A stretch of DNA of 64,000 bases from Cyanophora paradoxa CCMP329. Lineage: Eukaryota; Plantae; Glaucophyta. Below are positions 17,024-63,900 of the stretch, piece by piece. The notes below the pieces were generated by a model, which was given only the letters and a program-made list of their open reading frames with translations, had not been told where the DNA came from and did not search any database. A program made the position numbers and the translations under genes. Each line of letters opens with the position of its first letter. Position 1 is the stretch's first letter. The stretch lies in NCBI GenBank assembly GCA_004431415.1, contig QPMI01000614.1, positions 62,001 through 126,000 of the forward strand, given 5' to 3'.

Positions 17024-17095
17024 TGGTCCTGCCCAGATTCGAACTGGGGTTTTCAGATTCAAAGTCTGATGTGCTCACCACTGCACCACAGGACC
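17024..17095 (-). tRNA. tRNA-Gln (anticodon TTG)
   Basis: The reverse complement GGTCCTGTGGTGCAGTGGTGAGCACATCAGACTTTGAATCTGAAAACCCCAGTTCGAATCTGGGCAGGACCA folds into a complete cloverleaf with A and B boxes. Confidence 0.95.
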
Positions 17096-21390: not shown

Positions 21391-24300
21391 ATGAACGGAG
21401 GCGGTGCGATGTCGCCGAGCGAGGCGAGTCGGCTGCGTGCGAGGGCTGGCGCGCCGGCGCCTTCGCCGGCGCCTTGCAATTTGGACAGCGAGCTGGAGAA
21501 CCCGCTAAAGATGTTCTGCAGGCCTTCCACGGTGCGTGCGGCGTAGCGATGAAGCTCTCTGCGCGTTGACGCGCGATTGCGAGCGCCTGCACGTCGGGCG
21601 TGACGCGCCGCTCAGATCGCCGTCATCGGCGCGACGGAACGCCCTGGGAGCGTTGGGAGGCTGCTGCTCTGGAACCTCGTATCGTCACCGTGCGGAGGCA
21701 CGCTCTTCCCGATCAACCCGAACCGACGCAGGCGAGGAAAGGCGCCGCGGGCCGGCGGAACGACCGGGATGACGTGCTTGCCGCGCAGCGTGCTGGGCAT
21801 CAAGGCTTACGAGAGCGTGAAGGAGATCCCCGAGCCAGTGGAGCTCGCGTGCATTGCGCTCCCGGCGCCGCAGGTGCTCGCGGCAGTCGAGCAGTGCCTC
21901 GACGCCGGGGTGAAGGTGCGCCCCTCATCCGCGCGGGTGCGAGCGGAGTCCGAAGCGCGGCGCAGGGATGCATCATCGTGTCATCGGGCTTCAAGGAGCA
22001 GGGGGAGGCCGGGGCGAAGCTGGAGCAGGAGATCATGGCCCGCGTCCGCATCGCCGCCTCCGCCCGCGCCGCCGCTTCCCCGGGCGCAAAGCGCCTCGCC
22101 ATCGCCCCGATGCGGATCCTGGGGCCTAACTCGGTGCGCGGCGCGCGGGGCGGGGGCGCGGGGTCGCCGACGCGGCGCAGCTCGGGGTGATGATGCCGTA
22201 CACGGGCCTTAACGCGTCGATCGGCTGGACGGGGATGCCCCGCCCGGGCTCCGTCGCCCTCGTCTCCCAGTCCGGTGCCGCCGCCGCCGGCAGCGGCGCG
22301 CGGGCAGCGGCGTGACGGGGCGCAGGGACGGTGATGAACTCGCTGATCGACTGGACGCAGCGGCAGCAGGTCGGCTTTTCGGCGCTCATCTCCCTCGGCA
22401 ACATGTCCGACGTCTGCTGGTCCGACGTCATCAACATGCTCGGTGCGCCGCCGCCGGCCGGCCGGCCCGGCGGGGCCGGCCGGCGGCGGCCTCACGCGGC
22501 GCAGGGATGGACCCGCACACGCGCAGCATCCTCCTTTACATCGAGAGCATCGGGGATACGAAGGCGCGCAACGGGGCGGGGCGCGGCGGGGCGGGGCGGG
22601 GCGGGGCGGGGCGGGGGCCGAGGCGGGGCGGCAGGCGTTCATGTCGGCGGCGCGGAGCGTGGCGCGGGAGAAGCCGATCGTAGTGTACAAGGCGGGGGTG
22701 TCGGAGGCGGCGACGTCGACGGCGGCAACGCACACGGGGGCGCTGGTGGAGAACAACGACGTCGTCGACGCCGCCCTCCGCCGCTGCGGCGTCCTCCGCG
22801 TCCAGCACCTCCAGGCCCGCCCCCCGCCCTCGCCCTCCCCCCCGCCCCTGCGCCCACCCCCGCCCAGGACCTCTTCGGCCTCTCCAGCGCCCTCCACTGC
22901 CAGCCCCTCTGCCGCGGTGCCGCCCCCCGCGCCGCCCGTCGCGGCGGCGGGGCGAGCGGCGCGCAGGGCGGCGCATCGCGATCGTGAGCAACTCGGGGGG
23001 GCCCGGCATCATCGCCACTGACGCCCTCCTCGCCGGCGGCTGCGAGGCGCGCCCCGCCATCCCGCCGCCCCGCAGCGCCGCGCGGGGGCCGACGCGGCGC
23101 GCAGCTGGCGAAAGTGGCGGCTGCGACGCGGGAGGCGATCCGGGGGCGCTGCCGGCGCGCTGGGACGCCCCCACGAACCCGCTCATCGTCCCCTCGGACG
23201 CCGGCGAAGAGTGCGCCGGGGGCGGGGGCGGGGGCGGGGCGGCGGGGCGGAGGGCCGGGCGGGGGCCGACGGAGCGCAGGGCGTACGCGGCGGCGGTGGA
23301 GGGGATGATCCGGGACCCCGGCGTCGACGGCCTCCTCGTCCTCGTCGCCGCCCAGGCCCGCCCCGCCCCGCCCCCGCCCCCGCCCGGGGGCCCGACCCTC
23401 GACCGCGCGCAGCCCGCCTCGGACCCCCTCTCCCTCGCCCACCGCATCAAGCCCATCATCGCGCGCCGCCCCGCCGCCTGCTGGGCCGCGCGGCGGGCGA
23501 CAGGGCGGGCAGGTGCGGGAGCGGGAGGCGCACGCGCAGGGGGCGGTGCACGCGACGCCGGCGAAGCCGGTGATCGGGTGCTGGTTCGGGGGCCGGGGGA
23601 TGTCGGAGGGGGAGCAGGTGCTGGCGGCGGCGGGGGTCCCGATGGCGGAGTTCCCCGACGTCGCGGCGCGCGTCTGCGCCGAGATGTACCACTACAGCGC
23701 CAACCTCCGCCTCCTCTACGAGACCCCCTCCCTGCCCCTCGACACCGACTCTCGCACCCCGGACCGCCCCGCCGTCGCCGCCCTCATCCGGCCCGCCCCA
23801 CCCCGCCTCGCCCCGCCCCGGCGCCCCAGCGACCGGCCGCGCAGGCGCGCGCGGGAGGAGGGCCGCTCCGCCCTGAACGAGTACGAGTCGATGGCCGTCC
23901 TCTCCGCCTACGGTGCGCGCCGGCCGGCCTCGGGGCGCCGGGGGGCGAGCGGCGGGGCGCAGGGATCCCGTGCGTGGAGAGCTTCATCGCCCGCACCGCC
24001 GACGAGGCCGCCGCCGCCGCCCGCCGCATCGGCTTCCCCGTGCCGGCCCCGCCCCGCCCCGCGGGGACGCCCCTCACGCCCCGCAGGTCGTCGTCAAGCT
24101 CCTCTCCAACCAGGTGCGCCCCGCCGACAGGGGCGGGGCGTGGGGCGGGCGGCGAGGGGCGGCAGGTGTCGCACAAGAGCGCGCGGCACGGCGTGCGGCT
24201 GCACCTCCACGACGAGGCCGCCGTCCGCAGCGCCTTCGCCGCCATCGCCGACCTCGGCGTCCGCCCCGCCGCCCCGCCGCCGCCCCGCGCCCCCTCCCGT

Positions 24301-26653
24301 ACCCGACGGCCGGCAGGGCCCCGAGGCCATCGGCGTGACCGTCCAGAGGCAGCACGGCTTCACCGCCGGAGCCGCCGGCTTCGAGCCGCAGGGTGCTCCA
24401 CGCCCCCGCCCGCCTCGCCCCGCCCCGCCCCGACACGCGCCGCCTTGCGCAGCGACCTGCGAGCTCATCGTCGGGAGCAAGACGGACGCGCAGGCGCACC
24501 CCGCACCGCGTGTTCCGTGGGCGGCGGGCGCTGACGAGGATGCAGTTCGGGCCGGTGCTGCTCTTCGGGGCGGGGGGCGTGCGGGTCGAGGTCCAGCGCG
24601 ACAAGTGCCCCGCCGGCCGCCCCGCCCCGGGCCCCGGCGGCCGCTGAGCGCCGGCAGGGCCGTCTCGCTGCCGCCCCTCAACTCGACCCTCGCGCGCCGC
24701 ATGATGGAGCGCACCCGCGTCTACCACACCCTCACCGCGCGCCCCGCCCCGTCCCGTCCCGCACGCGCCGCCCCGCTGCCCTGACGCCGGCGCAGGGCGG
24801 CGTGCGGGGCTCGCAGGTGCGGGGCCGGCGGGGGGGCGGGGCGGGCGGGGGCGAGCGGCGGGGGTGCAGGAGACGGACGTGGAGGGGCTGGTGGCGGCGC
24901 TGGTGGCCTTCTCGCAGCTCGTCGTGGAGCAGTACGGCGAGATCGAGAGCATCGACGCCAACCCCCTCGTCGTCACCCTTCAGGACGGCGCGCCGCCCCG
25001 CCCCCGCCCCGCCCGCCCCGCCCCGACGCCCCCGCCAGGCGCCCTCTGCTGCCTTGACGCCCGCATCTGCCTGCACCCCCCGGGCTCCTCCCCTCCTCCC
25101 CTCGCCATCCGGCCCTTCCCCCGTCAGGTGTGCCCCGCCCGCCCGCCTGCCCGCCAACTGGCCCCTCCCGACGCCGCCGCAGTACGTCTCGCAGTTCACG
25201 CTGCCGGCCAAGTGCGGGCCCCCGCCGCCGCCCTTGGACCGCCCGTGCCGACGCCGCGGGGCCGCGCAGGCGGCAGGCGCCGGCGGCGGGGGAGGCGGGG
25301 GCGGGGGCGCCCGCCGGCGAAGAAGGCTCCCGCGTGGGCCAAGTACGCCCCCACCTCGCGGTGCGCCCCCCGCCCCCGCCCCGGTCGCCCCCGAGCCCCG
25401 CGGCAGGCCGGCCTCCAGCGCAGGCCCCGCCGCCGCCGCCTCGCGCGGTGCGCTCGCCGCCGCGCGGCGCGGTGCGCGCGGGCGTGAGGGGCGGGCGGCA
25501 GGGCCGAGCTCGTGGTTGGACGGGGACCTGCAGGTGACCCTCCGGCCCGTCCGCGCCGAGGACGAGCCGCTCATGGCGCGCCGCCCCGCCCCCGCCCGCC
25601 GGCCCTCCGCATGATGCCGCCGGCCGCCAGGTCGCCTTCCACTCGACCCTCTCGGAGCGGTGCGGGGCGGCGCTGCGCTCCCCACCGCCGCGCCTCGAAT
25701 GCCTCGCAGGTCGGTCTACTTCCGCTACTTCGCCGCCGTGAGCCTCGCCGAGCGCACCTCGCACGGCACGCCCCGCCCGCCCCGCCCCGCCCCCGCCCGC
25801 CCCCCCGCCGATGGCCGAGCGCAGACCGCCTTGCCAAGACGTGCTTCATCGACTACGACCGGTGCGGGGGCGCGGGGCCGGGGCGCGGGGCCGGGGACTG
25901 GGCGAGGGGCGCGGCAGGGACATGGCGCTCGCGGCAATCATCTCGCACCCGCACCCCGATGACAGCGCCCCGGCCGGCATGGGCTCCCTCCAGTGCTGCC
26001 TCGCCCCCGCCCGCCCCGCCCCACCCCGCCGACGGCCGCCGGTCGGGCAGGACGGGCGTGCGGGGCCGGGCCCAGTCGGTGACGGAGGACGTCTGCATCG
26101 GGGTCGCCCGCGCCGTCCGCAAGGCGGGGCCGCTCGGTGAGCGGCACGCGCGGGGCGGGAGAGGAGGGGGCGAGGGGCCGGGGCGGGGCCAGGGCTCTGG
26201 GACGAGGCGGAGGTCGGCGTCATCATCTCCGACTCCCTCCAGGGCCGCGGGTCCGGCCCCGCCCCGCCCCCGTTGCCGCCCCCGCCCCACCACGCCCCGC
26301 AGCCTTGGCCGCATCCTCATGCAGCGCCTCATCGAGGCGCCCGCCCCGGCGCCCCGCCCCCGCCCCCGCCCCGCCGGCGTCTCACCCGCCGGCAGGTCTG
26401 CCGGGCGGAGGGCCTGCGCTCGCTGCACGCCGAGGCGCGCGGGGCCCGCCGCGGGGCGCGTGCTTGGGGCGGGGCAGATGGCGGGGGCGCAGGTGCTGGC
26501 GGAGAACACGGGCATGCGCCGCATCTTCGACCAGCTCGGCTTCGAGGCGCCCCCGCCCCGCCCGCTCGCCCCGCGCGCCCCCGCTAAAGGGCTGCGCAGA
26601 GCCACTACAACGCGTCGGAGGACGTCATGCACGCCGCCCTCGCCCTCGCCTGA
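21391..26653 (+). CDS. Bacterial-type bifunctional acetate-CoA ligase (ADP-forming, ACD alpha+beta) / GNAT N-acetyltransferase fusion, very intron-rich
   Basis: [140 protein letters not shown]. GNAT part: VTLRPVRAEDEPLM, CFIDYDRDMALAA, GLGRILMQRLI, VLAENTGMRRIFDQLGF. Confidence 0.9.
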
Positions 26654-45960: not shown

Positions 45961-47393
45961 TTAGTCGTCCACCTCCTCCACAGTTGTGCCGTCATTGCCC
46001 GCCTTCTGCTCACCGAACGTCATTGGCCGCCAGCGCTCAGAGAGGCATGAAAAACCAACCTTCTCGGTCTCCTCCTGCATATCCGACGTCCAGAGGGTCA
46101 GGTTGTCACGAAGCAGCTGCATGATGAGGGTGGAGTCCTGAACCGAAAAGAGAATCCATCATAAAGGCAAGGACCGTGCAGTTGTTGGTGGACAAAATGT
46201 ACCTTGTACGACTCGTCGCTAAGAGTGTCGAGCTCCGCAATCGCATCATCGAACGCCTGCTTTGCCAGCTGGCACGCGCTGTACGGAGTACTTGAGGCGA
46301 AGTTGTCAAAAACGCGCCGGAAAGTGCGAACCGATCAGGGAAGTTCAGAATCTCGTAGTAGAACACGGAGAAGTTGAGCGCGAGGCCAAGGCGAATGGGG
46401 TGGGTCGGAGGCAGTTCCGACGACGCAATGTCCGACGCCTGCTTGTAAGCCGCGAGCGAGTCGTCCGCAGCCGCCTGCCGGTCCGCGCCAGTCGCGAATT
46501 CCGCGAGATAGCGGTGGTAGTCGCCCTTCATCTTGTAGTAGAAGACCTTCGACTCACCGCTCGTCGCGGCCGGAATGAGGTGCTCCACCAAAATGCTAAG
46601 AATGTCACGGCAAATGCCGGCGAGCTCCTGCTCACAGAAGGATTGGACCACGCCGAAACATAGCAAAGGGAGCCAATCGCACCTGCTCGACCTTGATGCG
46701 GTAGTCACGAATCTTGGCCACGTGCGCAGTCTGGCCCTTGTTCTCCTCCTTCTGCTCAATGGAGGAGATGATCCGCCACGACGCACGGCGAGCGCCGATG
46801 ACGTTCTTGTAAGCAACCGAGAGGAGATTGCGCTCCTCGACGGTGAGCTCCAAGTCGAGCTTAGCGACCTTCTTCATGGCCTCCACCTAAGGACGAAACG
46901 GAGGAGGGCGTCAAGGGTTCGGACGCGCAGCCGGCGATTGGAGCGCGAACCATCTCATCGTAGCGCTCAGCTGCACGGACGATGCGGAGGAAAGAATCGC
47001 CGGAGTCAGCGGCAAGAGGAGGAACGGTTTGAATGTGCAGAGCCGGGTGCTATTCTCAACAGCCCAGGAGGCACGCTAGGTTGCGCAGAGAAGTGTCGGA
47101 TAAAGCAATTCACCTTGCTCGGCCAGCTGCGAGAAGGGGCGGGGGTTCAGGCGTCAGCGCAGGCCGCAGATCTCAAGCCACCTAAGGTGAGTGGCGGGAA
47201 GATCGTGCAAGGCGAACCTTGGCCATGTAGACCTGGACGATGAGCGCACGACAAGGTACACCACGAAGTCGTAAGCCAACGCGATGTAGGGGGACGCTCG
47301 CGCTGGCGCTAAATGCCCGCGGCGGCATCGTCGCCAGCCGGCGACATTCTAACACATCGACCGACGCACCTGCGCCTCACGCTCGTCGGCCAT
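45961..47393 (-). CDS. 14-3-3 protein, multi-exon with 5' micro-exons
   Basis: MADEREAQ|VYMAK|LAEQ|[90 protein letters not shown]. Confidence 0.97.
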
Positions 47394-47490: not shown

Positions 47491-50340
47491 ATGACGCTGG
47501 AGCGCAGCTCGCGGCGCAGCGGCGGAAGGTTCCTATGAGAGGTCGCGCGCTGCGGATGGATGTTTTTGAATTCTTAGCGCAGGCGCACACAAGGCGGCGC
47601 GGACGTAAGCGTCGGCGACGTCGCCCTGTACGCGGTGAATGCATCACTGCGCGCGCGCTCTAACCCCGCCCCGCAGCGCTACTCCCCGAATACTTCGGCC
47701 GCGGACGACGCCGTCGCCTTCGCGGAGCGCGAGCCTCTCGAGGAACTACTCTGCGGTCGACTCTGCGCCTTACAAAGTGAGCGCGCGGATGGTGTTTTGG
47801 GAGAGAAGAAAGAGCAGGCACTTGACCGGCCCGCTTGCAATTTCCGCAGTTCCCGCCTCTCTCCCCTCCCCGAGCAAGGCAGAAGAACGGGGAGGGTGCG
47901 GCAGTCACCGATTTTTTGAGCGAGGACAAGGAGGAGTTGAACGTGGATCCGTCTGCTGGCACAAAGACGATTTCGAATACGATTGCGACTGCGCTGCAAA
48001 CAGCTTACTATGCTATTTCAAGCAGCGGGTTATGCAGGCGGTTGTTCAAAGGAGCACTGTCACTCGCCGTTTTCTTCGTTATCCTGGCGGTCGTAGCCGA
48101 GCTCGTGCAACACGATTATCCTGGCGGTCGTAGCCGAGCTCGTGAGCCGAGCTCGTGCGAGCTCGTAAACCTGTTACTTCTGCCTTACAATACGTGCACA
48201 GTTCCTCTGACCGGGCATGACTACCTGGATCACAAGTTCGTCCCTCTAGTCTTCCCTTCGTCCCTCCCAAGAACGGCTCAAGCCGGCGAAAGTTTGGCAC
48301 AGTGTCCAAATGCAATGCTGTGCAGATTTCGTTCGCTAGCGGAGATGACAGTGACAGAGCAACTGAATAAGCTGGAAGCGTCCTTGGAATCCCGCGCGTT
48401 TCCTGGTTTCTATCTGTGATGCGCAGCAATCTGAAGTACCTGGACAGGCTCTGCCCTGACAGCTGCGGCACTCGCCTCCCGAGTGGACGAGCTCTCCCAA
48501 GCCGTCAAAGAGCTTCGACTCCAGGCCGAGAAACCTCATTCCCCTCCTAAAGTGAAGGTGCTCTCTTTCTAATGCTTGCACATTGCAGCAATGCTGAAGG
48601 ATTTTCAGGCTGAGGAAGTGCAGGCAGAAGAGAAGGAGGGGACAGGTAGTGAAGTGACACTGGCCCTCGAGCATAAATTTCAAGGCGAACTGTCACTTCT
48701 GCGCAAGGATGTAATGGAGAGCGTAAAGAAGATGATACCAAGAACGGCTCAAGCCAGCGAAAGTCTGACACAGAGTCTGGAGGAGAAGGTCGTGGCTGTA
48801 ACAGCGGAGATTCTGCCAAAGCTGGAGCACAGTATCGACGAACGATTCGCGAAGCTCTGGAAAGAGGCTGATCGTCTTGGGGCAGCTCTAGACCCAAAAC
48901 ATCTATCTCAAGCTCTCGACTCGGCCCCAGTGAAGGCCTGGGTCTCGAAGGCCGTTCATGAGGTTCTGCTCTCACCCCATGAGCTGGCAATCGCCTTGGA
49001 CCGCGCGAGAGGACACAAAGAACAGCTGAATCTGACAGCCTTGGTAGCCTGGATGGAAGCTTTTAAAAATTTCAATTTGTGACCCTTCGTTCACAGGTGA
49101 TGAAGGTTGTTCGTGAACAGCTCGAAGTCTTCGCAGCTGATGAGGTGCGTGATGTGTTTGCATCCTCGTGCTCCTGCACTCTGCTCCCCCCCCCTCCCCC
49201 CCCTCCCCCTCCCTCCCCCCCCCTCCCCTCCTCCCCCTCCTTTCCCGACGCCTTCATTCAGATCGGCCTCCCCGATCTGGCACTTTACTCTGGCGGTGGT
49301 CGTATAGTGCACGGAAGTGGGTGCATCATTCTCCTTGGATGCATTCGTTTCTGTGTGTGAGCAAAGGCAGGTGGACGGCGCCATCGTTCCTCCCAACGAA
49401 CAAACGACCGCTACAGGTCACCACTGATCCGCATTATTTATTGTTTCTAAATTGCAAGCGCAGATGCTGCCTCCGGGTGCCCTGGTCCATGAGAGGGCGT
49501 GGTCCATGTTCAAGCACTATATGATTTCTATCCCGCTGTACGTTTTTGGAGTGCCGGCGCCCCCGGCCAGCCGGTCGAGCAGCTAATATTTTGGGCGGTA
49601 GGCATTACGTCGTTCTGGCCAGGAACTACCTCACGCTAGCCTTTCTTGGTACTCTGGCCCTTCAGGGAGACCTTGTCTACCGCTCACTTCAAACAGGATA
49701 CACACAGTCTACGCATGCTCCCGAAGTCATCCTTCAAGTGAGTTCTGAGTTCATTAAGTTGTACATACGATAATCACCAGTACGCAGGCGCATCACGATC
49801 GTGGGCAGTGCTGGCCGATGGCTGGCCAGTCTGGATATGTAACCATTCGATTGCCGGAGCGGGCAGTAATTGAGGCTTTTAGCATTCAGCATCTCGAACC
49901 CACTGTCATTGTTTCGGCTGTATGCACTGTCATTGTTTCGGCTGTATCTAATTTCATTTAATTTCATTCTGCAGGATACAGCTCCAAAGGACATTCGTGT
50001 GGAGGCACTTGGAGACTTCCCCACTGCAGGGACGAAGGGGGAGGTCATTGCTCGTCACACCTATCTGCCATCCAATGGAAAAGTGCAGGTAATGAATCAA
50101 CGCTGCTTACATTCAAAGATCTTGAAGTCTTTGCGTCCTTATCATGTTTGCCGTGTATTGACCTGATGTTCCACTCAGACATTCTATGTGGACACTACAC
50201 TGACTCCTGCACTTCGAACAAACCGATTCTTGCGCCTTTGGGTGGATTCTAACCATGGCAATAAGCTCTACACTTGCATCTACCGGTTTCGTGTCCACGG
50301 CAAGCCTGCGCTCAGCATAGACACGCAAGCTAGCGGCTAG
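47491..50340 (+). CDS. C-terminal SUN (Sad1/UNC-84) domain nuclear envelope protein
   Basis: TM segment ALSLAVFFVILAVVAEL, coiled coil, then ADEIGLPDLALYSGGGRIV, APEVILQ, GQCWPMAGQSGYVTIRL, APKDIRV, SNHGNKLYTCIYRFRVHG. Confidence 0.88.
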
Positions 50341-50534
50341 CTAGCTGCATCTGTGACCTACGCCTGTGTGGGCTACACATAGGAGGGTGCGGCCCTCGCC
50401 GTTGCCGGCCCGGCCATTCCCCCCAAGGCGCGAAAGGGGAGTACCGTTCCACCCTCGCAATGGCCTAAGCCGCTCGTGTGGCGTGTGCAGCATCGCGTTG
50501 TCGGTGGGCAGTAGTGGTCCCAACCCACACAAAC

Positions 50535-52860: not shown

Positions 52861-52892
52861 GCTTAACAACTACGAGACCTTATTGCGGAGGG

Positions 52893-52908
52893 GGTGGTGC
52901 AAGGATCG

Positions 52909-52954
<46 letters not shown>

Positions 52955-53001
52955 GGGGAGGGCCTGCCCTAGCCATGGGCTTTTCTGCATGCACGGCCCA
53001 G

Positions 53002-53032
<31 letters not shown>

Positions 53033-53121
53033 CCCCCTCCCCCCCTCCCCCCCCCTCCCCCCCCCCCCCCCTCCCCCCCCCTCCCCCCTACCCCCCCCCC
53101 CCCCGCGATCCTTGCACCACC
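52893..53121. repeat. Hairpin: perfect 18-bp inverted repeat extended by a poly-G arm and a C-rich arm
   Basis: GGTGGTGCAAGGATCGCG(G)n ... (C-rich)CGCGATCCTTGCACCACC. Confidence 0.85.
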
Positions 53122-53573
53122 GACAGCAAGCCGCGATCCCCCCAAATTGTAGCCTGCTCTTCACACGACAGCAAAGCCACCGTGCTGGAACCACGGCATG
53201 CATCGGGCCCTTAGGGGGAAACAACAGAGCAGTGCCAAGCTCGCCTGAGGGCGGACTGGACGACCCCCGTCTGTGAGGCCCTCCTCCCACGAGGGAGGTG
53301 GCCTACGAGCTGAGAAATACTATAGGCTATTCCTTACCTACTGAGCCTCCGGGAGGGGGGGAGGGGGGATGAGGGGGGAGCCTCCGGACCGATAGTACCA
53401 CTCGTGCTAATCGTAATCGTTGAAATCGCAATCGTAACCGCAATTGCTACGCGCTACTGTATGGAGGGCGGGGGGTGGCGAGGGGGGTGGGGGGGGGGGG
53501 GGGGGGGGGTGGGCAGGGACTTGGGCTTCGGGTTGGGCGATTTCTTTTTCTGTTTTTTCGAAACGGCTCATCG

Positions 53574-56010
53574 TCAAGATCTGTCAGCATCATCATCGAT
53601 CGAAATCTCAACACTCTCTCTGCCATCCACCTCCTCAGAATATGCGGCTTGCTCGCCCTGGAAGTACTCTCGAAGAGATGAACTTGAAGAGGTGCTCTCA
53701 AAGAGGAGAACTTCGCCCTCAGACGTACAGCAAGCCAGAAATCTGCAAGGGAAGGTACTCATGGACATGCGAATCAATGAAAAATCCTAAACTACACTTG
53801 CCGGCCATCTTGACTGAAATCAACTGCATGCACAGTCCCAGCTATTTTCTCTGTATTTAGCTGCAATCGTAGGTTGTAAGTCATCATGGGTCGAACACAC
53901 AAGGCTGGCAGGGGGCAGGAATTTCGGCATTCGAATGGCCGCACCTGAACATACCCGCCATGTGCCACGTCAAATATATACAGAAAGCCTGCCCTGCCAA
54001 GGACAAAGCAGCGCCCATTCGGATGTACTGCAAAGCGTGTCCACCATCCTTTCTGCTCTTTCTCATCCGGAAACGAATATTCCATCGCAGTGCGGATGGA
54101 TGAAGGCCTGCATTCGTCACCCCACGGACCCGCAAAAGGCTGCGAACTTTAATCAAAACTGCCCAGGACGTGGGGGCTGTGTATCACGGTTCCTAGGTCT
54201 TAGGGGTTCTTAGGGAAAGCGGCATTGCCAGCTGGCCCTGGTAGAAAGAAAAACTATCTGAATACTCTCCCTTGCAATTGCTTTTAGGTGGTTTCAAGAG
54301 GCACACTGACCCGCTTGTCCATGGCTGGTTCAGAACATGAGAGATCCGACAAACAAGATAAAAGCAGAAACCTTACAGTTCGATGGCCGCCAGAGCCGAC
54401 CGAATGAAGGATTTTTGCCTGCTTGTTTCGAAAGGAGGAAAGGTGGACCGGCCTCATCATTCACTGGAATGAATGCCACGGCATCGACAATATCACCGTG
54501 TGGACGCTGTGTGCTGAAGCCTGGACGGGAGAGCTGCCAGGCCCCATTGGCAAGGCAGACGCAAGAGTTCGGGGCCCGGACCAGGACAGGATGCTGTGGG
54601 GGCGAAGCCTCAAGACGTCTGGAAGCGTCTGTAGTTTGCAATCTTCGATTGATGGTATCTACGATCCTCTGAGCAATGGCAGATGACGGTATCTACCATC
54701 CTCTGGTCAAGCATAGTGAATGCATCCTGTGGCCAAGAAAAGAGAGCTTACATCCATATCTTTGAAAAAAACGTGGGATGGAGTGGCCCCGTCTTCAATC
54801 TTGGGGCTGGCGACTCCTGACTGATGGCAAGCAGAACTCCCAGAACTTCCTGATGCATTCTCGAGCCAGCTGTAGATGCGGACTGTACTTGCGGCATCAC
54901 AAGTTGCAAGGAGAATGCGCTGACTGCCTCCGGCCCTTTCTGCAGATTGCGCATACACATCAAGATGAAGGAGTTGTGAGGGAGGCATGATCAGGTCCGA
55001 GAAGCTTGCAAGGCAGACTCGCCCGAGTACATCCCACAGTCTGTTTTAGGAGCGTGATTACCTCCGTCATCCGGCACACATACAAGCGTACCGCACAGTA
55101 CTGTCTACAGAAGCCGAGAAAATTAAACTGCGCAAAAGTAAAGGCGTATCGAAGAGTTGGAATGCAAATTGCGACAGGAGCAACGCGAAAGGGTGATGGT
55201 TAAAGATAATGACGCACCCTGCATGGATTGGGTGGGGCCGCAGTGAGTACACCGGGCCTCCATGCCCAATTAAAAGCTGCACGCCGTTATCAAGCAAGAA
55301 GGACGAGTGAATCGAGATGTGGGTGAGAATCTGGCGCACCCCTGCCGAAACTCGGCCTTCAGGGAGCATCTCGACCACCTGCCGGGCATGGAAAAGTTGA
55401 ACGGTGGAATTACTGCTTCGGAAACTGCTCCAGTGAACGAACCGCAACACCCATATCTCGTGGACGCGTGCCAGGTTCTTGTGCTTCCCCTCCTATCACA
55501 AGAATGGCATTCGCACGATCTGGTGCATTTGGGGACCCTGCCTGCGGTCTTGCCGTCCACGTCACAGCGTAGCCCACATCTGTCGAAGCCTGAGCAGAGC
55601 GTTATATCTCAGTCGCTCAGTGCCGAAAGGGGCGCGCCTTCCCAAACGAAATTCTTCTTCTCAACACCAAACGCTTCTTGTATCCCACAGCGGGACCCTC
55701 CGGTCCGGACGGGAGGCACTGGAGGACGAACGTGCCTCTATAACCAGTTGTAGCGAGGACATAACCGAGGCCACGGCTGTGCTGCACGTAAAAAAAAGGC
55801 AACATTAGCTAAAGATAACTATTTCGATTTTACTGTTTTATCCCGGGAGGAAGAGCAGAACCTTCACAAACGCGATGTCCCACAGTGCCTTTTCCACAGG
55901 GTTAGAGGACATCTTGCAGGAGTATGTGCAAGCATACTCGTAACTGAACGCACTCAGAGACTTTTTGATATCTCAAAAATAAAAGGGCACCTTCTGGACG
56001 AAGCCGCCAT
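53574..56010 (-). CDS. Divergent EED/ESC/FIE-like WD40 protein (PRC2 subunit homolog), multi-exon, apparently intact
   Basis: The spliced product is collinear with EED as recalled: YEYACTYS..KALWDIAF (cf. QPLFGVQF), YVLATTGYRGTFVLQC (VFATVGSNRVTLYEC), DVGYAVTWT (ENFYTCAWT), LIGHGGPVYSLRPHP..LIFSASVDSTVRLWDV, PGFSTQRPHGDIVDAVAF..LLSK ([26 protein letters not shown]), GWWTRF..FVLGRAGFLYIFDV (IWYMRF..LALGNQVGKLYVWDL), VHAVDFSQDG.FLACCTSEGEVLLF. Confidence 0.75.
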
Positions 56011-56126
56011 CTGCTTTCCCCTGCCACGAAGCCGCCCTTGATCTGTGACTACGATTAGGACGTCTTTTGATCTGCGATTGCGATTAGGACGTGCGATTAC
56101 GATTAGGACGTCTTTGAGGCTCGGCC

Positions 56127-56850
56127 TTATCGCGTGGTGTCCAGCGTCTCCTCCTCTAGATCCGCTAGTTGCGCCTGCTTCAACGCGCTGGAGCGCGCAT
56201 TGCGCTGCATATGCCGGAGCCGTGCCTGCCGATTGAAGCGCCTGCCGACCCCGAGCTTGCGTGCACGAGTCGATGATCGACGTTCGGAGCCGCGGCACCC
56301 CGATGAACTGCGTGAATCGACTGCCGCAGTGCTGGAGGCGCTGGCGGAACCAGGCAGCTGCCTGTCGGGGTACGCCTATGCCGTACTGGACGGCATCATG
56401 CCGTACTATGCCGTATGCATTCATATATGAAAAGACGCAATACGATCTTCTACGCTTGGGAAAACTACTTCCGGCTGTCCGCTGTGTCTTCGTACTACAA
56501 TGGACGATGTTTTCCTCGGGAATGGAAGGGTCAACGCGCGGTGATCTGATCGTGACCTGCGTTCAGTGCCACTAAGCCACTGCTGGTTTTTATGATTTTA
56601 TTCATGTTTCATCCCAACACGAACCTGGTCCAATCCGGGACTGTATCGTCTGCATCTGACGAGGTGCTTGCGCCACTAAGCCTTCTTTTCGGGCCGGCAC
56701 CCCTCCAAGAGCTGCAAGCTGCGAGTGGGTCACCAATATCCACCGTAGAGGCGAGAAGGGCCCGCGGAGGCGGCGACGGCTGGATGGGAACGTCCTCGTC
56801 CTGTGCGAAGTCTCATTTGCGCAAAAAAAGAAAAGCATAGTCAAACCTGG
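56127..56850 (-). CDS. Element-internal orphan gene C (basic, Arg-rich C-terminus); structure uncertain
   Basis: DFAQDEDVPIQPSPPP..GPKRRLSGASTSSDADD and SERRSSTRARKLGVGRRFNRQARLRHMQRNARSSALKQAQLADLEEETLDTTR* (stop at 56127). Confidence 0.35.
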
Positions 56851-56975: not shown

Positions 56976-59490
56976 TTAGAGCACCTGAGTGAGCTTGGAG
57001 TTCAATTCTCGAAGGGCCGTATTTTGCAATCGAAGACGTTTGACTTCGCTCTCCAAGCGGTGGATGGACCGCTCCTGAACAATTGCAAAAACAATTAAGA
57101 GCACATTGCCAGGCCACGAAAACATGCCTGTACCTTATGGCCCACTTCGGCCTGCAGCGTGTTGCAAAGGAGCTGAATTTGCAGGTCAGCAATGCTGCTA
57201 ACTTCGTTTCGTTTCTTATGCGAACCTGAGTGCTGATGTGCAAGGTTTGCATCTCCTCGAGAACACCATCGCCCTCAGCTGCCTCGATTTCTTGTCCTTG
57301 GGGGGCGGCCCCGTCAAAGTACTTCTGGGTTCTACTTAGTGCTTGGCCAGGAGACCGTGGGACAGGGGGTGCACTGAAGTTTCGCCATCGTCGAAGTCAG
57401 AACTCTCGTGCCCTTCTTCGGAATCGTCACATTCAAGTGCACACACGGGTTCTGGTGGTGCAGGAACTTCGAACGTGACTGCGGTACTGGCATTTCAATA
57501 CATGCTCAGGTGGCCAGACAAGGACATACCCCTTTCCATCGAATCTCTTGAAGGAGTGCCAAGCAGAGTGGACAGGGAGGGGCGAACCTGCAAATGCGGT
57601 TTGGAACAAGTGGCGAAACAACAGAGCAAGACCCACCTTGTGCCTAATTGCACGAGGTGTAGGGGCAGTGTCTGCAGTGCGCAGCTGGCGGCCAGATGAT
57701 GTTATTGGGTTCTGACTGCCCTGTTCGGGAACTGAGAAGAGCGAAGCATGTTGCGATCGAGAAAAAGGAACCTTCGGCATCGGCACACAGGTTCGGTTGA
57801 GTGAGCGGCACAGGGTGGATGAGCCCGGTGCATGCCGGGTTCCAGCATGGTAGTTTTGCTGTCGTGTAAAGAGCAAGATTGTGCCGCAAAGATTAGTAAT
57901 CGTAATCGCAAAGATAATTTAGAGATAAATCGCAGCATTCGGCGCAGACCTTGGCAGGCGACCGCTGGGCAGGAGAAAGGGCGGCTGCAGAGCCTGGCGT
58001 AGCGTGGAGGTTATCCTGCAGCAGAAGTCAAGGGTTAGCAGTTCGTGTCTGAAAGTATTCCGGTTGCGAAGACGGTTTGCAAACCTGTAGAGTTGCAAGC
58101 AAGGACCGGAGGGAATCGAGTTCCCGGGGTACGAGGTCCTTCCCCTCGGATGCGACTGCCTCCATCTGGTTGCAGTTGAAGCACGTCGCCAAAAAAGAAA
58201 GCTGCCACACAGCCACAGCCATACATACCTTTGCAAGCGCCGCCTCACAGAGAGCGCGGATGGTGTCCGTATCCCACCGCTGACTGGTGTTGGACAGCAG
58301 TAAGAGCCCAATATATGGGGAGACCCGCACCTGACCAGCGGCAGGCCCATAGATGCCATCTTCATCTCGGCGGCCGACGGGTTCCTGCGGAAAATTCACG
58401 ACATATGCAATGACAAGCCTTTCGGACAGCAGACAAACCCAGAAACCAAGCTCCGCAAGCATCCTGCAGCACGGCGAGTCATACAGGGGAGTGGCGGAGG
58501 GGGCGGAGGGGGAGGGGGGAGGGGGTATTGGAGGGAGGGGTGGAGGCGGGAGGAGGAGGGGGCTGTGGGTGAGGAAGGGGGGGGGGAGGGGGGGGGGAGG
58601 CGTGGAGGGGGAGGGCAGGGCGGGGGCCCAAGGAATTGTTACCGGCGTTTTTCGGCAACTTCTTCCGCAGCAACCGCAAGCTTCGCTTCCAACTCAACGT
58701 TGCGGGCCTCAGCCGCCTCGAGCCTGGTGGATATGCGCTCCTTGATGGTCGAGAGTTCGTCCTTTGCGGCCTCCAGCCGTGCTACGTAGCTGTACAGGCC
58801 TTCGAGCTCGTCCCTGCACAATGTATCAGACAGTTTAAATCCAGAAACCAGGCGTGTGCCAACCAACGTACGTCGCTGCTGCTAGCCCTGCGGCCTTACA
58901 GGTGACCTCGTCTTGCACCCGGTGCAGGTCGCCTCTGAGCCGAAGCGCATCGCACTGCGCATCACAGAGCCAGTCGCCAAGAGACGAACAATGATCGGGG
59001 CTGTGCACACCTGAAGAGTATCGATCCGGGCACGAGCCACATTGAGTGCGGCTCGCACTCGGTCAGATGCCCCCTCAGGGCTCAATCTGTTCGCATGGAG
59101 TGTGAGGAAGCGGGGGGCAGAGCACAAGGCAGACATAAGCACCCGCCATTTGAGCCCAGAGCACCAAGAGAGAGGGACTCTGCTGTAAGAACGAGCTCGC
59201 TGCAGCAAAACAATTAGCATCCAGGTCCATCGGTACATTGACTTAGAAGTAGTCACCGCAGAAGTTCACCACACTTGCCGTCGCAGGTACGCCCCTCGGC
59301 GCCCTGATTTAACGCTGTCGGCGCTGGTTGCATAGGCAGTCCATCATCCCCCAGTTGAACCGGTGGAACGGGCGCCTCCATCTGTCGGAGCCTGCAGGCG
59401 TGCTTTCGTGTGAAGAGCATTTCCATTACGATCATCAATCATTACGAGTTCAGACCTTGGTGTAAGAGATTTTGGAGGCGCTGAACTCAT
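56976..59490 (-). CDS. Element-internal orphan gene D (coiled-coil protein), multi-exon; structure uncertain
   Basis: Probable start MSSAPPKSLTPRSEL. Coiled-coil exons DELEGLYSYVARLEAAKDELSTIKERISTRLEAAEARNVELEAKLAVAAEEVAEKRR and ERSIHRLESEVKRLRLQNTALRELNSKLTQVL*. Confidence 0.45.
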
Positions 59491-59875: not shown

Positions 59876-60916
59876 CAGTTGCGTACCCCTGCACGCCAAC
59901 AACAGACCAGCGCTAGCCGCGCCGACCAGCCACATACATCTGAGGCCGAGGTAGTTAACAATACCATACGCGTTGCTGTTGCTGCACAGCAGCGCGCCCC
60001 AGGTCCGCGCCGTCCCAGCGCGCCGCCCGCGTTGGAATGCCCGCGTTCGCAACCCCGGCCCGCGCGTGCAGGCACTCGCACTGGGAGGCCCGCCAATCTA
60101 CCCTCGCGGAGCGTGGATTGGAACCCCTGGGTGCCCGCCCCTCCTCCCGAAGTCCGATCTCGCGTGCGCTGTCCGACCCCCCTCTGCGCGCTTCCGCCGC
60201 CCTGCAGAATCGACCAGCCTGGCAGGGAGGGATCGCGCTTTCGCGCTTTCCCCGAGTGCGCGCCTTCGATTTCGATTTCAGGGCGCTTCGATTTCGATCT
60301 GACCCCCCTCCGCGCGTGCGCCGCATCGGCCCCGCAGGCTACCGACGGGTCCCGGCCCCGCCGGGCCTGCAGGAACTCCCACCGCCCAAGAACGACGACG
60401 CGACGCTGCACACGACACGCGCGCGGCCCTAGGCTGTGCGGGGGTGGAGCGTTACTCCCCTTACGGGTCTCGGGGGGGCAACGGCCGGGCCGGCAACGGC
60501 GAGGGCCGCACCTTCCTATGCGTAGCCCAGACAGGCGTAGTACACAGCTAGCTAGCTCTGTCTACGCTGAACGCATAGCGCTACCGCGGTCCGCCCCTTG
60601 CGCTACTGTCTTCACTGAACTCCCCTGGCTCCACTGGCTCTGAGAGGCCTCGACTAGCTGGCCTGAGACTGCCCTGCCAGTACAGCACACGCACAACCGC
60701 CAGCTAGAGCAAACCAGCTCGCGCTCCTGCCGTCGATCTGGCGCCGAAGAGCGGCTACCCCCCCCAACAGCTCCGGCCCTCCGGGCCTCGGCCTCCGGCT
60801 CCTCAGCCGCTGCCCGAAAGCTGACTGCGCATAGCTACGATCGCGTATTCGGTTGTGTCCGAGGTCGGGGATGCGCGGCGAGCGGAGGCGGCGCAAGCTC
60901 GAAAGCTCAAAGCTCA

Positions 60917-63900
60917 ATGTGGGCCTTGTTCGGTGCGAGGCCGCGGGACAAGTTCTCTCTCGAGAACCTGCAGTGCGTCCAACCACAGCGCGGCGCCTCT
61001 GCTACACAGCCACGCTAACGGAGCGCTGCACAGGTACCTGTACAACACGCTCGTGCGGAACCCGATCATTAACGATGCAAATCGAGAAGCGATCGTCGAG
61101 ACGCTTCGTACAATCTCAGAGCTTCTCATCTGGGGCGACCAGCACAACTCCAACTTCTTCGAGTGCGCCTGCCGTCCGCTGCAGCCCTGCAGGAAGCGCT
61201 TCGCGCTGCGGCGAAGCAGGTGGCGCTGCTCTGACTCGATTTCCGGCGCGCAGCTTCTTTTTGGAGAAGAACATGCTCTCTTTCTTTGCAAAGATTGTGT
61301 CGCAACCGAACGCTGGGAAGACGGCGAAAGTCCAGGTCCTTCAGACCCTGAGCATTCTTATACAGAACCTCACGAACGAGACTTCTGTTTGTGCGCTATG
61401 AGTTACCCCCGCCTGTCACTCCGCGTTAAGCCTCTGCAGACTACATCCTGTCCAACAACCACGTGAACGACCTTATCACGCAAGACGGTTTCGACTACAG
61501 CGACGAAGAGACCATAGCCTACTACATTTCTTTCCTGAAGACTCTCTCGTTGCAGCTCAACAAGAACACCATCCAGTTCTTTTTTAGCCAGGTTCAGGCG
61601 ATGCTACGAAAGAAGTCACGCTTTACTTCCGCAAATGATTTTTCCTCTGCTCTCGTAGAAGCACAACTCGTTTGCACTGTACTCTCAGGCACTTCGGTTT
61701 TTTGGGCATGACGAGAGCATGGTCCGTGCAGCTGTGCGAACCATTACCTTGCAAGTTTTCAAAGGTATGACCGGTTTGCGAACTGTTCCGATTCTTGGTG
61801 TTTTGAATGCGGGATCCGCAGTGGAGGACCGAGCTGTACGAAATTTCCTGCTTTCGCCTGGCCCTGCACAGTACTTTTCGCAGCTAGTGCTTTATATGTA
61901 CAGTCTATCACGACGGTTGGACGAGTTCTACTCGAGGCTACAGTAAGTTCCTGTTCATTGCTCTGCTGCCGGAAGAGAAGTGGCGAATCGTTATTTTCCT
62001 GAGCAACCTGCCCAGACATGGCGCGATGCTGAAATCGGAGAAAGAAGGCGTTGGCGTCATAGCTGACCTAGTGAGCATGTCGCCTGCACTGAAGTGCCTC
62101 CTGATCGACCCTTGTTGCAGGTCAGCGAATTCATGAACTGCCTGTACTATATCAACGATGTGTATTTGCTTGGTGTAGACTCCATCAATAAGGTCCATCC
62201 TTTCTGTCCTTCATCTTTGCGTGCAGCTTTGCTCACGAATCCTGCCGCTTCAGGTCTTGACCGACAATCTCCTCCAGCGCTTCCTGCTTCCCCTGCTCGT
62301 CGGGTCTGTTCTGCCCCTCAAAGTGGAAGTTCCTGTGCGTTTCGGTCGGGTCATCATAATCCTGGCACCGCTCAGAGAACTGAACGATTGCTTTGCAGGA
62401 GGGCCGCGTGACACCTCTCGTCGCTCTCTTCCTGTTGGCCCAGGTGAGCCCCCCCCCCCCCCCTCCCTCCCACCCCCTCCCTCCCCCCCCCCCTCGAAAA
62501 AAAATCCAATCGACTGCGACAGGTCTTCACGGGGCTAACTCACCCACCCGTCCTGAACACCGTGGCGCTATCGTTTTTCGGCATCCGTCCTCCTCGTTCA
62601 CTCAGCAATTCTAACTCCTACTTCGCGAACGGCGGGCTGTACGGTTCAGTAGAGCCTCCTCCTGACGTTCGCAAGCTGCTCGGTCTTCCTGGGGATAGCG
62701 ATGTGCATCACTCGCTTCGCTCAAGCACCATTGGGTCGCTTCACGCCTCCTATTCAGCACCGTCCCCACCATCCTCTTCTCTTCGAGGGCCCGAATTTTC
62801 TGCAGCACAGGACACGAACGGGTATCCTCTTCACCCGCAGAGTCACTCCCATCATCCCGGTTACCCTCCTCTTAACGGATCCATATCCCGTTCATCCTCT
62901 TCGTCATCCGCCCCTGGAACTGGTCCTGGCTACCTCTCTCCTGCCCACTCAGTGAACTCATCCGCTCCTGCCCCTCCACCATTGTCCTCCTCGCCATCCA
63001 TGCGGCAGCGTATGCATCGGGACTGCCACCTCCTCCAGCATCTAAGGTCAGTTTCGCGCAAGTTCACATTGCGCGAGCTAACTGTTTGGTTTCTGCAGCT
63101 CTGCGGATGACCGCGTTGTTCTCTGTGCTGTCTGTCTTTTACACGCCTTGGTGACGAATCCTGGCACAGACAAGGTCCGGATGTTCTCCAGTATGGGTAT
63201 CACCATCTAATCGTCATGCAGGATCTCCTTGAAACCGCTGGACTGCTCCCTCTGCGTTTGAGAAAAGCGAAATCGCTTTTGGACTCCCTCGTGGATGCCA
63301 AGGTAAGCACCACAGTAAATACATTTGCAGAGTAATGAAGGGTTTTGCAGGCCGGTCTTAGTGGACACTCTAGCGCCCTTCCCCTCTCACTTGCGTCTGG
63401 AAAGTATGCAAAGAAAGTAAGTGGTCTCCGGGAATCTCTGACAATGCGTGCAGCCCAGCCGCTGCTGCCACGGCACTCGTTGCTGCAGCACACACTGGTG
63501 CCGGGGGGGGTGGAGAGTCGGCATTCGACACGCTCTCACAGATTCAGGTTCCTGCACGATCTCATCGTTCTTTTGTTCAAGCTGATGTGGGATGACAGAG
63601 TGGGATATTCGGACCATCGTACAACGCACCAGTCATGGACGCCTTGTTGACTATCGCATTGAACCCATCCAAGGCAGGCTTGTTAATGAGCTCCTACGTT
63701 TTTGAATCTTAGCGTCCGTTTTCGCAGTGGCGCCTTGTGACACTCCATATGGTTGTCCGTCTCATTCTTGAGCTTTGCTTCAACAGTGTACGACCTTGTC
63801 AAACCCGTGCTACCTGTCAAGCCTAACACCGGACTTAGGCAACCAATAGGACATCTCTGTCGGAACATCATGCACGGCTTCTGGAAGACGCTCACCAGGT

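Follow-up and report, generated by a model that had tools for sequence, protein, structure and literature searches.

A strongly diverged candidate relative of EED in the glaucophyte Cyanophora paradoxa

EED-type proteins and Polycomb in glaucophytes

Cyanophora paradoxa, the reference glaucophyte, counts in the literature as a species without the PRC2 core, ESC/EED, E(z) and Su(z)12 included (PMC5405695), and no E(z)-class SET protein was found in Cyanophora (PMC5725981), so the usual partners of an EED protein may be absent from it. One survey's zero for Cyanophora is void, since the data set has 0% BUSCO completeness (PMC9018016). In another glaucophyte, Cyanoptyche gloeocystis, candidates for both E(z) and ESC are listed (PMC9018016, supplementary tables); glaucophytes thus had the PRC2 core, and a Cyanophora orthologue would be expected by descent. 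Cyanophora identifiers occur in the PRC1 profile alignments of PMC10638273 and not in the EED or EZH alignments there. PRC1 is retained in Cyanophora paradoxa.

Here we describe a gene in a 64-kb stretch of Cyanophora paradoxa DNA (the window, 64,000 nucleotides, whose positions are used throughout) that, judging by its sequence, is most likely a diverged EED relative, although surveys of this species had found none. It resembles human EED, Drosophila ESC and Arabidopsis FIE in being colinear with them over seven blades and in sharing three cage aromatics, the arginine at human position R367 and three introns. It differs from them in its length (506 aa, against about 370-440), in its insertions (exon 10 and a Ser/Gly-rich loop), in the change of 13 of 29 invariant residues, including those of N-Y-V-D-C-x-x-W and GHRDEVLS, and in being invisible to single-sequence searches, in a species where E(z) and Su(z)12 are not reported. 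The EEDs of the ciliates Paramecium and Tetrahymena are likewise beyond standard homology searches, and dedicated profiles were needed to recognize these real PRC2 subunits (PMC10638273); however, they were found biochemically within PRC2, whereas the Cyanophora gene is known from sequence, with no known E(z) partner. As for the ESC candidate of Cyanoptyche, exon 9 of the Cyanophora gene has no detectable similarity to any of 1.84 billion proteins, which indicates either that this gene is much more diverged or that the Cyanoptyche sequence lies outside the library searched. We suggest that the locus is probably an ordinary, single-copy, expressed nuclear gene whose product, a 506-aa WD40 propeller, belongs to the EED/ESC/FIE family as a strongly diverged member.

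Gene model and transcript

RNA-derived contigs from three studies (Logan; RNA-like runs X1, X2 and X3) trace a spliced minus-strand transcript with 15 exons and 14 short introns, and all 14 joints fall on canonical minus-strand splice sites, 11 of them GT..AG and three GC..AG. A DNA run (X16) covers the same stretch unspliced, in one contig piece and at uniform depth. The coding sequence extends on the minus strand from an ATG at 56008-56010 to a TGA at 53574-53576, with 506 codons, consistent phases and no in-frame stop, and the RNA contigs have substantial k-mer depth in the three studies. A preliminary description, made from the letters alone, had proposed an open WD40 frame at 53574-56010 with a gap near 54150-54330. 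The RNA contigs and splice sites give exactly those coordinates, and the gap is accounted for by a 171-nt intron (54140-54310) adjoining a 14-nt micro-exon (54311-54324). The strings quoted in that description, ALWDIAF, GYAVTW and GWWTRF, are all present in the translation, in exons 3, 5 and 13, respectively. The features are as follows, where P values are those of hhalign against the EED profile introduced in the next section.

53574..56010, minus strand: coding span of the EED-like gene, 14 coding exons, from RNA joints, splice sites and phases
56095..56353, minus strand: exon 1, 5' UTR only, with in-frame stops; contigs reach 56294 (X1) and 56353 (X2)
55991..56042, minus strand: exon 2, start codon (MAASSR...), from RNA joints and translation
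55862..55943, minus strand: exon 3, ALWDIAF with the W proposed as equivalent of F97, from translation
55638..55781, minus strand: exon 4, blade 1 (YVLATTGYRG), EED profile columns 68-85, P=0.027
55443..55589, minus strand: exon 5, GYAVTW, in which Y takes the human Y148 position and W is the family-invariant W91, P=0.048
55340..55378, minus strand: exon 6, 13 codons, from RNA joints and translation
55218..55276, minus strand: exon 7, LLIGHGGPVYSLRPHP, profile columns 141-159, P=2e-6
55092..55127, minus strand: exon 8, LIFSASVDSTV, from profile alignment, P=3e-3
54752..55040, minus strand: exon 9, 96 codons, blades 3-4 and a Ser/Gly-rich tail, with GHRDEVLS replaced, P=0.005
54582..54692, minus strand: exon 10 (37 codons), inserted with respect to the EED profile and without match
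54377..54533, minus strand: exon 11, RPGFSTQRPHGDIVDAVAF...FLLSKQ, aligning with the EED hallmark segment, hmmsearch columns 251-269, P=5e-4
54311..54324, minus strand: exon 12, 14-nt micro-exon; 13 letters lie between the joints in three runs, and the sites are canonical after a 1-nt shift
53945..54139, minus strand: exon 13, GWWTRFAV...GRAGFLYIFDV, with W, W and R at human W364, Y365 and R367, P=5e-6
53802..53860, minus strand: exon 14, TVHAVDFSQDG, from profile alignment, P=0.051
53485..53742, minus strand: exon 15, last blade strand, acidic tail and stop at 53574-53576

The upstream end given for exon 1 is the furthest reach of any contig (56353, in X2) and thus a minimum, and run X3 has an alternative acceptor at 56101. 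At the other end, the 3' UTR in exon 15 extends to about 53485, just short of a poly-G tract. An open frame of 506 codons at ~53% GC that spans 14 introns points to selection on the frame. Its GC3 is 0.50; two further coding stretches within the window have 0.79-0.81.

Likeness to the EED family

The gene was compared with an EED profile based on 28 full ORFs from metagenomic EED genes, fetched by motif scan (alignment A2). Against this profile, human EED chains align as one stretch with E=3e-171, and WDR5-type proteins as five to seven stretches. The comparison was made exon by exon, not on the joined 506-aa protein, and eight exons (4, 5, 7-9, 11, 13 and 14), with P values from 2e-6 to 0.051, fall on successive, nearly contiguous profile columns (58-370) that cover blades 1-7. 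Fisher's method over all 12 exons gives the likeness a P of 6e-15, where controls made by shuffling or reversal give 0.02-0.87, and the minimum P among 84 such control exons was 0.013; these controls are not drawn from other WD40 families, and any seven-bladed WD40 protein may match partly in register. For exons 7 and 13 the in-register match is two to four orders of magnitude better than the best out-of-register match. Furthermore, when the EED HMM was run on all six frames of the window, exon 13 came out on top (E=0.01), and five of the best eight matches were exons of this gene, four of them colinear; the segment in exon 15 matched one blade out of register. Single-exon scores are low, the best being 8.8-11.3 bits.

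The EED hallmark segment, FPxFSTxxxHxNYVDCxRWxGDxxLSKS, aligns with exon 11 in register (hhalign E=P=0.0005, against P=1.2e-3 for the out-of-register alternative). The exon retains P, F-S-T, H, V-D and L-S-K of this segment and has D, I, A, F and P in place of the invariant N, Y, C, W and G, which turns N-Y-x-x-C-x-x-W into D-I-x-x-A-x-x-F. Relative to the 28-sequence alignment, residues are kept at 16 of the 29 invariant columns and at 11 of the 25 nearly invariant ones. The GHRDEVL-type motif is missing, as had been noted, and the stretch aligned with it reads DLIMPPSQLL. In human numbering, the HMM alignment places aromatic residues at three of the four positions of the methyl-lysine cage (Y148 to Y, W364 to W and Y365 to W), together with the arginine at R367. 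The cage had been described as complete; this holds for the three positions and the arginine, whereas the equivalence of F97 with the W of exon 3 had been set by eye only, and the in-register profile alignment of that exon is not significant.

Intron positions point the same way. The intron before exon 7, at profile column 140.00 in phase 0 and three codons ahead of GHG, coincides exactly with introns in the metagenomic EED genes L076, L008 and L031; the intron after exon 8, at column 171.67 in phase 2, where it splits the R codon of R-LW, has an exact counterpart in L008, and the intron after exon 14, at column 375.67 in phase 2 following S-x-D-G, has one in L005. A fourth intron is one codon off (column 97, against 98 in four EED loci). 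The coincidence with canonical EED genes has P ~1e-3. The exon-wise profile comparison, the cage residues and the common intron positions together support the likeness to EED/ESC/FIE that had been proposed, and 14 spliceosomal introns, three of them at ancestral EED positions, fit an old resident gene rather than a captured copy.

No better-fitting family than EED emerged from exon-level searches of Pfam, the PDB and the library of 1.84 billion proteins. When single exons and open segments were searched against the PDB with phmmer, no EED and nothing significant was returned; the best WD40 match was ATG16L1 against exon 13 (E=0.07), and this one blade and the EED profile fit the exon roughly equally well. 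An ATG16-type identity was rejected, as only one blade matches and the ~35 aa ahead of the first blade leave no room for the long N-terminal domain that an ATG16 should have. Identity with p55/RBBP4, a well-conserved family that would be expected to surface in plain PDB searches, was set aside because it is absent from their results. With Pfam, including its family-specific propeller models, eight exon segments gave only generic WD40 (E=0.11) and a spurious hemP, and exons 13 and 9 fell into generic propeller clusters only in the ESM Atlas. The 96-aa exon 9, searched with phmmer against the 1.84 billion proteins, found neither an orthologue nor itself, but two weak matches to long proteins, in which the EED HMM has no match and which were therefore of no use as WD40 decoys. 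Conserved neighbours of the gene are an FPL/CLEC16A-like ORF at 60.86 kb and, at 46.1-46.8 kb, a 14-3-3 gene whose ORF is 99% identical to EukProt tig00021352_g20712.t1, the next best matches being other glaucophytes. As the longest exon has no match while the neighbouring 14-3-3 is present in a related collection, the gene model may be absent from public catalogues.

The inverted repeat and alternative explanations

The gene lies between the arms of an inverted repeat.

50307..50520, strand not assigned: left arm of the inverted repeat, from repeat search and BLAST
60375..60575, strand not assigned: right arm, just upstream of the FPL/CLEC16A-like ORF

The arms are ~210 bp long, 83-85% identical and 10 kb apart (BLAST aligns 165 nt at 83%), their ends read TGCG(C/T)TCAGC, and only two copies occur within the 64-kb window. 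The bracketing by long inverted repeats that had been described is therefore real as to this one pair, but the pair is modest, and the rest of the repeat finder's 'inverted repeats' are low-complexity poly-G or poly-C tracts. Rfam and tRNA scans returned nothing at the arms. A weak match to the EED profile at 50224-50319 on the plus strand, beside the left arm (E=0.35), was judged to be noise.

It would be tempting to infer from this arrangement, as the preliminary description did, that a 10.3-kb transposon, bounded by terminal inverted repeats, picked up an EED paralogue, which serves as a PRC2 decoy or anti-silencing factor. A real ~210-bp inverted repeat around a 10-kb segment (50.3-60.6 kb) with a chromatin-type gene does recall Pack-MULEs, non-autonomous CACTA elements and VANC-type elements; moreover, this gene alone has recognizable homologues between the arms, and its GC3 is atypically low. 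Unlike such elements, however, the segment has no common direct word of at least 7 bp within ~60 bp of the outer ends (a target-site duplication of 2-4 bp is beyond this test), no CACTA or other recognizable termini on its arms, and no evidence of further copies, and Pfam finds no transposase, integrase, reverse-transcriptase or helicase domain in any of the 65 open segments between the arms or in the longer ORFs, although short exons could hide one. In addition, the low identity of the arms, the uniform DNA contig depth and the nature of the supposed cargo, a complete 15-exon gene with introns at ancestral EED positions rather than a fragment or an intron-poor capture, all argue against capture, and the literature holds no canonical Cyanophora EED of which this gene could be the paralogue. 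We thus consider capture, and with it the decoy or anti-silencing role, very improbable; the repeat may rather consist of old dispersed or duplicated intergenic segments than of transposon ends. The same low GC3, without the third-position G+C bias of the two other coding stretches, could also be expected of a decaying relic, an EED gene left without partners that still gives rise to transcripts but is on its way to becoming a pseudogene. The loss of invariant residues would fit such a course, and so would a species in which neither E(z) nor Su(z)12 is reported (PMC5405695). Yet 14 introns are spliced out correctly to leave an unbroken frame of 506 codons, the k-mer depth is substantial in all three studies, and neither the cage aromatics nor the arginine has been lost, which makes decay hardly probable.

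A more serious question is whether the protein is an EED at all, or a lineage-specific WD40 propeller outside the family whose likeness reflects common seven-bladed features and chance motifs. This explanation would account for the failure of plain phmmer to give a significant EED match for any exon, for the generic clusters in the Atlas, for the match of ATG16L1 to exon 13 and for the loss of nearly half of the EED-invariant residues, and the controls of the profile comparison held no decoys from other WD40 families. Nevertheless, we regard it as unlikely, because the EED-specific hallmark segment aligns in register, cage positions are aromatic, three introns coincide exactly with those of EED genes, each informative exon prefers its own EED blade, and neither Pfam nor the PDB shows another family. 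Another explanation, which we judge distinctly unlikely, accepts the gene as an EED and supposes that E(z) and Su(z)12 are really gone from Cyanophora and that the remodelled methyl-lysine reader now works outside PRC2, for instance with PRC1 or another SET enzyme; a variant in which this reader is carried by a mobile segment and interferes with silencing is less likely still.

Thus, we suggest that the gene is probably a strongly diverged EED, which may have been overlooked by BLAST-based surveys of Cyanophora. By analogy with the family, its propeller would read a trimethylated lysine of a histone tail with its top face and serve as scaffold for a SET-domain methyltransferase. One meaning of the finding is that PRC2 may persist in Cyanophora but have diverged beyond the reach of standard searches, as it has in ciliates; if such a cryptic PRC2 proves true, the picture of where Polycomb was lost within Archaeplastida would change. 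Alternatively, the finding may mean that an EED can survive the loss of its enzyme.

Structure and expression of the minus-strand gene

Logan contigs of three RNA-like sequencing runs, each from a different study (X1, X2 and X3), and of one DNA run (X16) were placed on positions 53545-56450. Fourteen short segments of 47-171 nt are missing from the RNA contigs; the X16 contig contains the same stretch unspliced, in a single piece and at uniform depth. Allowing for positional ambiguity of the joints, 11 of the minus-strand introns are GT..AG and three are GC..AG. Exon 1 is 5' UTR and contains in-frame stops. The coding sequence opens with an ATG at 56008-56010, closes with a TGA at 53574-53576 and comprises 506 codons with zero in-frame stops and no phase conflict; its split codons encode S, G, R, S and R. 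The contig joints and exon phases show that the span of the preliminary description, 53574-56010, is exactly this coding span, and the strings that it singled out (ALWDIAF, GYAVTW and GWWTRF) all lie in RNA-defined exons. The stretch that it could not splice, near 54150-54330, is accounted for by the RNA contigs and splice sites: a 171-nt intron spans 54140-54310, and a micro-exon of 14 nt comes next, at 54311-54324.

GC..AG introns (3 of 14), from RNA joints
53743-53801, minus strand
55590-55637, minus strand
56043-56094, minus strand

Minor RNA contigs, at ~12-15% of the spliced-contig depth, read through intron 12 (adjoining the micro-exon; contigs within 54114-54324), and intron 14 is likewise read through (contigs within 53714-53831); these contigs represent precursor that is still unspliced or else retained introns. 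Run X3 shows use of a different 5'-UTR acceptor, at 56101. Intron 6 (55277-55339, 63 nt) is in frame and stop-free, with a translation that aligns loosely to the EED profile, and is spliced out in the RNA contigs; intron 10, of 48 nt, and intron 13, of 84 nt, also keep the frame and contain no stop.

Relationship to the EED family

A degenerate DNA pattern encoding the blade motif N-Y-V-D-C-x-x-W-x-G-x-x-x-L-S-K-S was used to scan metagenome contigs. It returned 100 loci, on contigs of which none resembled human DNA, and 28 complete ORFs from these loci were aligned (profile A2). Because A2 matches human EED chains in one stretch (columns 21-392, E=3e-171), whereas WDR5-type proteins score far lower and in 5-7 stretches, we regard it as a bona fide EED family profile. 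The gene model was searched exon by exon, and eight exons fall on successive, nearly contiguous columns of A2.

Exons of the EED-like gene on A2 (hhalign)
Exon 4, columns 58-91, P=0.027
Exon 5, columns from 95, P=0.048
Exon 7, columns 137-155, P=2e-6
Exon 8, columns 157-167, P=3e-3
Exon 9, columns 169-242, P=5e-3
Exon 11, columns 245-286, P=5e-4
Exon 13, columns 290-346, P=5e-6
Exon 14, columns 352-370, P=0.051

These P-values are calibrated, since the minimum among 84 reversed or shuffled exons was 0.013. When the P-values of the 12 tested exons are combined by Fisher's method, the result is 6e-15, compared with 0.02-0.87 in seven control sets, the controls being reversed or shuffled exons, so that this P does not cover the in-register mapping rate of non-EED seven-bladed WD40 families. 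For exons 7 and 13, the in-register match is better than the best out-of-register one by 2-4 orders of magnitude (hhalign); therefore, the signal is blade-specific, not just a WD40 repeat pattern. Furthermore, when all 64 kb were scanned in six frames with an EED HMM, the exon 13/14 segment ranked first (E=0.01) and five of the top eight hits lay in this gene, four of them colinear; the exon 15 segment aligned one blade out of register.

Introns of the EED genes among the fetched loci and the RNA-defined introns of the window were also placed on common profile coordinates, and three window introns agree exactly in position and phase.

Shared introns, with the loci whose EED genes carry them
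Three codons before G-H-G, phase 0: L076, L008, L031
Splitting the R codon of R-L-W, phase 2: L008
Following S-x-D-G, phase 2: L005

One further intron misses a match by a single codon (column 97 vs 98, phase 0, four loci). The chance of at least three exact coincidences among seven placeable introns is ~1e-3, and they are independent evidence for the EED-like reading.

Human F97, Y148, W364, Y365 and R367 correspond to A2 columns 53, 104, 317, 318 and 320. The methyl-lysine cage claimed earlier is borne out by HMM alignment at Y148 (Y), W364 (W) and Y365 (W), together with the Arg at R367; the alignment of F97 to W is not significant, and by eye the W of ALWDIAF is a plausible equivalent. Profile alignment agrees that the GHRDEVLS-type motif has been replaced. 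Exon 11, aligned to the hallmark segment, keeps P, F-S-T, H, V-D and L-S-K but not N, Y, C, W and G, and 16 of 29 EED-invariant columns are kept overall.

The exon-wise profile match, the cage residues and the shared introns suggest that the EED-like reading is probably right. Judged from its sequence, we consider it rather likely that the gene belongs to the EED family, most likely as a new, very diverged member. However, single-exon scores are low, nearly half of the invariant residues have been lost, a single blade of ATG16L1 fits exon 13 at about the level of the EED profile, and GC3 is 0.50 vs 0.79 in a 14-3-3 exon and 0.81 in an ATP-grasp ORF, two other coding stretches of the window. 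With exon segments as queries, phmmer against PDB returned no EED and no significant match (top WD40, one ATG16L1 blade, E=0.07), Pfam returned only the generic WD40 model (E=0.11), and Atlas embeddings gave 'beta-propeller' and nothing finer. Exon 9, the longest (96 aa), gave two weak unrelated matches and no self-match against the 1.84 billion representatives of a protein library. The neighbouring 14-3-3 product is present in a related collection; public Cyanophora protein catalogues may lack the EED-like gene or carry it in a wrong model.

The inverted repeat and the neighbourhood

The preliminary description placed the gene between long inverted repeats, of which one pair of arms is real.

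Inverted-repeat arms (BLAST, 165 nt at 83%; extended alignment ~85% identical)
~50307-50520, left arm
~60375-60575, right arm

The longer repeats reported by a repeat finder are poly-G/poly-C tracts. Such intergenic poly-G and poly-C/C-rich tracts, with runs of 30-45 identical bases, lie at 49152-49266, 52882-53121, 53450-53544, 58468-58636 and 62429-62503, explain the majority of the finder's 'inverted repeats', and include one directly 3' of the EED-like transcript end.

Other features of the window
17024-17095, minus strand, tRNA-Gln(TTG)
22984-24534, plus strand, ORF with ATP-grasp_5 domain, in a block of 80% G+C
46106-46816, minus strand, 14-3-3 exon (Pfam E=3e-44)
60855-61466, plus strand, FPL/CLEC16A-like N-terminus (weak, E=8e-4)

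The real arms are the sole positive evidence that the gene is transposon cargo acting as a decoy, and we find this reading unsupported. Only two arm copies occur in the window, their ends are not CACTA-like, and no direct word of at least 7 bp, as expected of a target-site duplication, flanks them. The 65 open inter-arm segments and the longer ORFs gave no hit to a transposase, integrase or reverse transcriptase, though such a domain could escape notice if split over short exons; scans for Rfam families and tRNAs at the arms were blank. Moreover, the right arm lies just upstream of the FPL/CLEC16A-like ORF and the 14-3-3 gene 3.5 kb outside the left arm, and 15 exons with ancestral intron positions are unlike a recent capture.

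The 14-3-3 exon is 99% identical to EukProt protein tig00021352_g20712.t1, its next relatives being glaucophytes such as Cyanoptyche, in keeping with Cyanophora paradoxa as the source of the window. G+C shifts at ~44000, from 62-80% (1-44 kb) to 50-60% (44-64 kb). Micro-arrays of AATCG/CGATTA type flank the EED-like gene at 53400-53445 (after the 3' UTR) and 56040-56110 (inside the 5'-UTR intron). They recur elsewhere in the genome, because a separate 190-nt X16 contig matches only 56056-56092 and continues into unlike sequence with similar units.

PRC2 in Cyanophora

Cyanophora was scored 0 for E(z), ESC and Su(z)12 by Mikulski et al. (2017; PMC5405695), who cautioned about incomplete gene models, and a SET-domain survey recorded no member of the E(z) class for it (PMC5725981). 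De Potter et al. (2023; PMC10638273) described EED as poorly conserved, with ciliate EEDs missed by standard searches; Cyanophora identifiers occur in their PRC1 alignments and not in those of EED or EZH. Sharaf et al. (2022; PMC9018016) scored the glaucophyte Cyanoptyche as E(z)=1 and ESC=1, and the data set behind their Cyanophora zeros had a BUSCO completeness of 0%. These surveys, including E(z) and ESC in Cyanoptyche, thus lead us to expect that Cyanophora inherited an EED orthologue; the literature that could be searched holds no report of one. We regard the EED-like gene as moderately interesting, since with it the loss of PRC2 in Cyanophora is again open to question.
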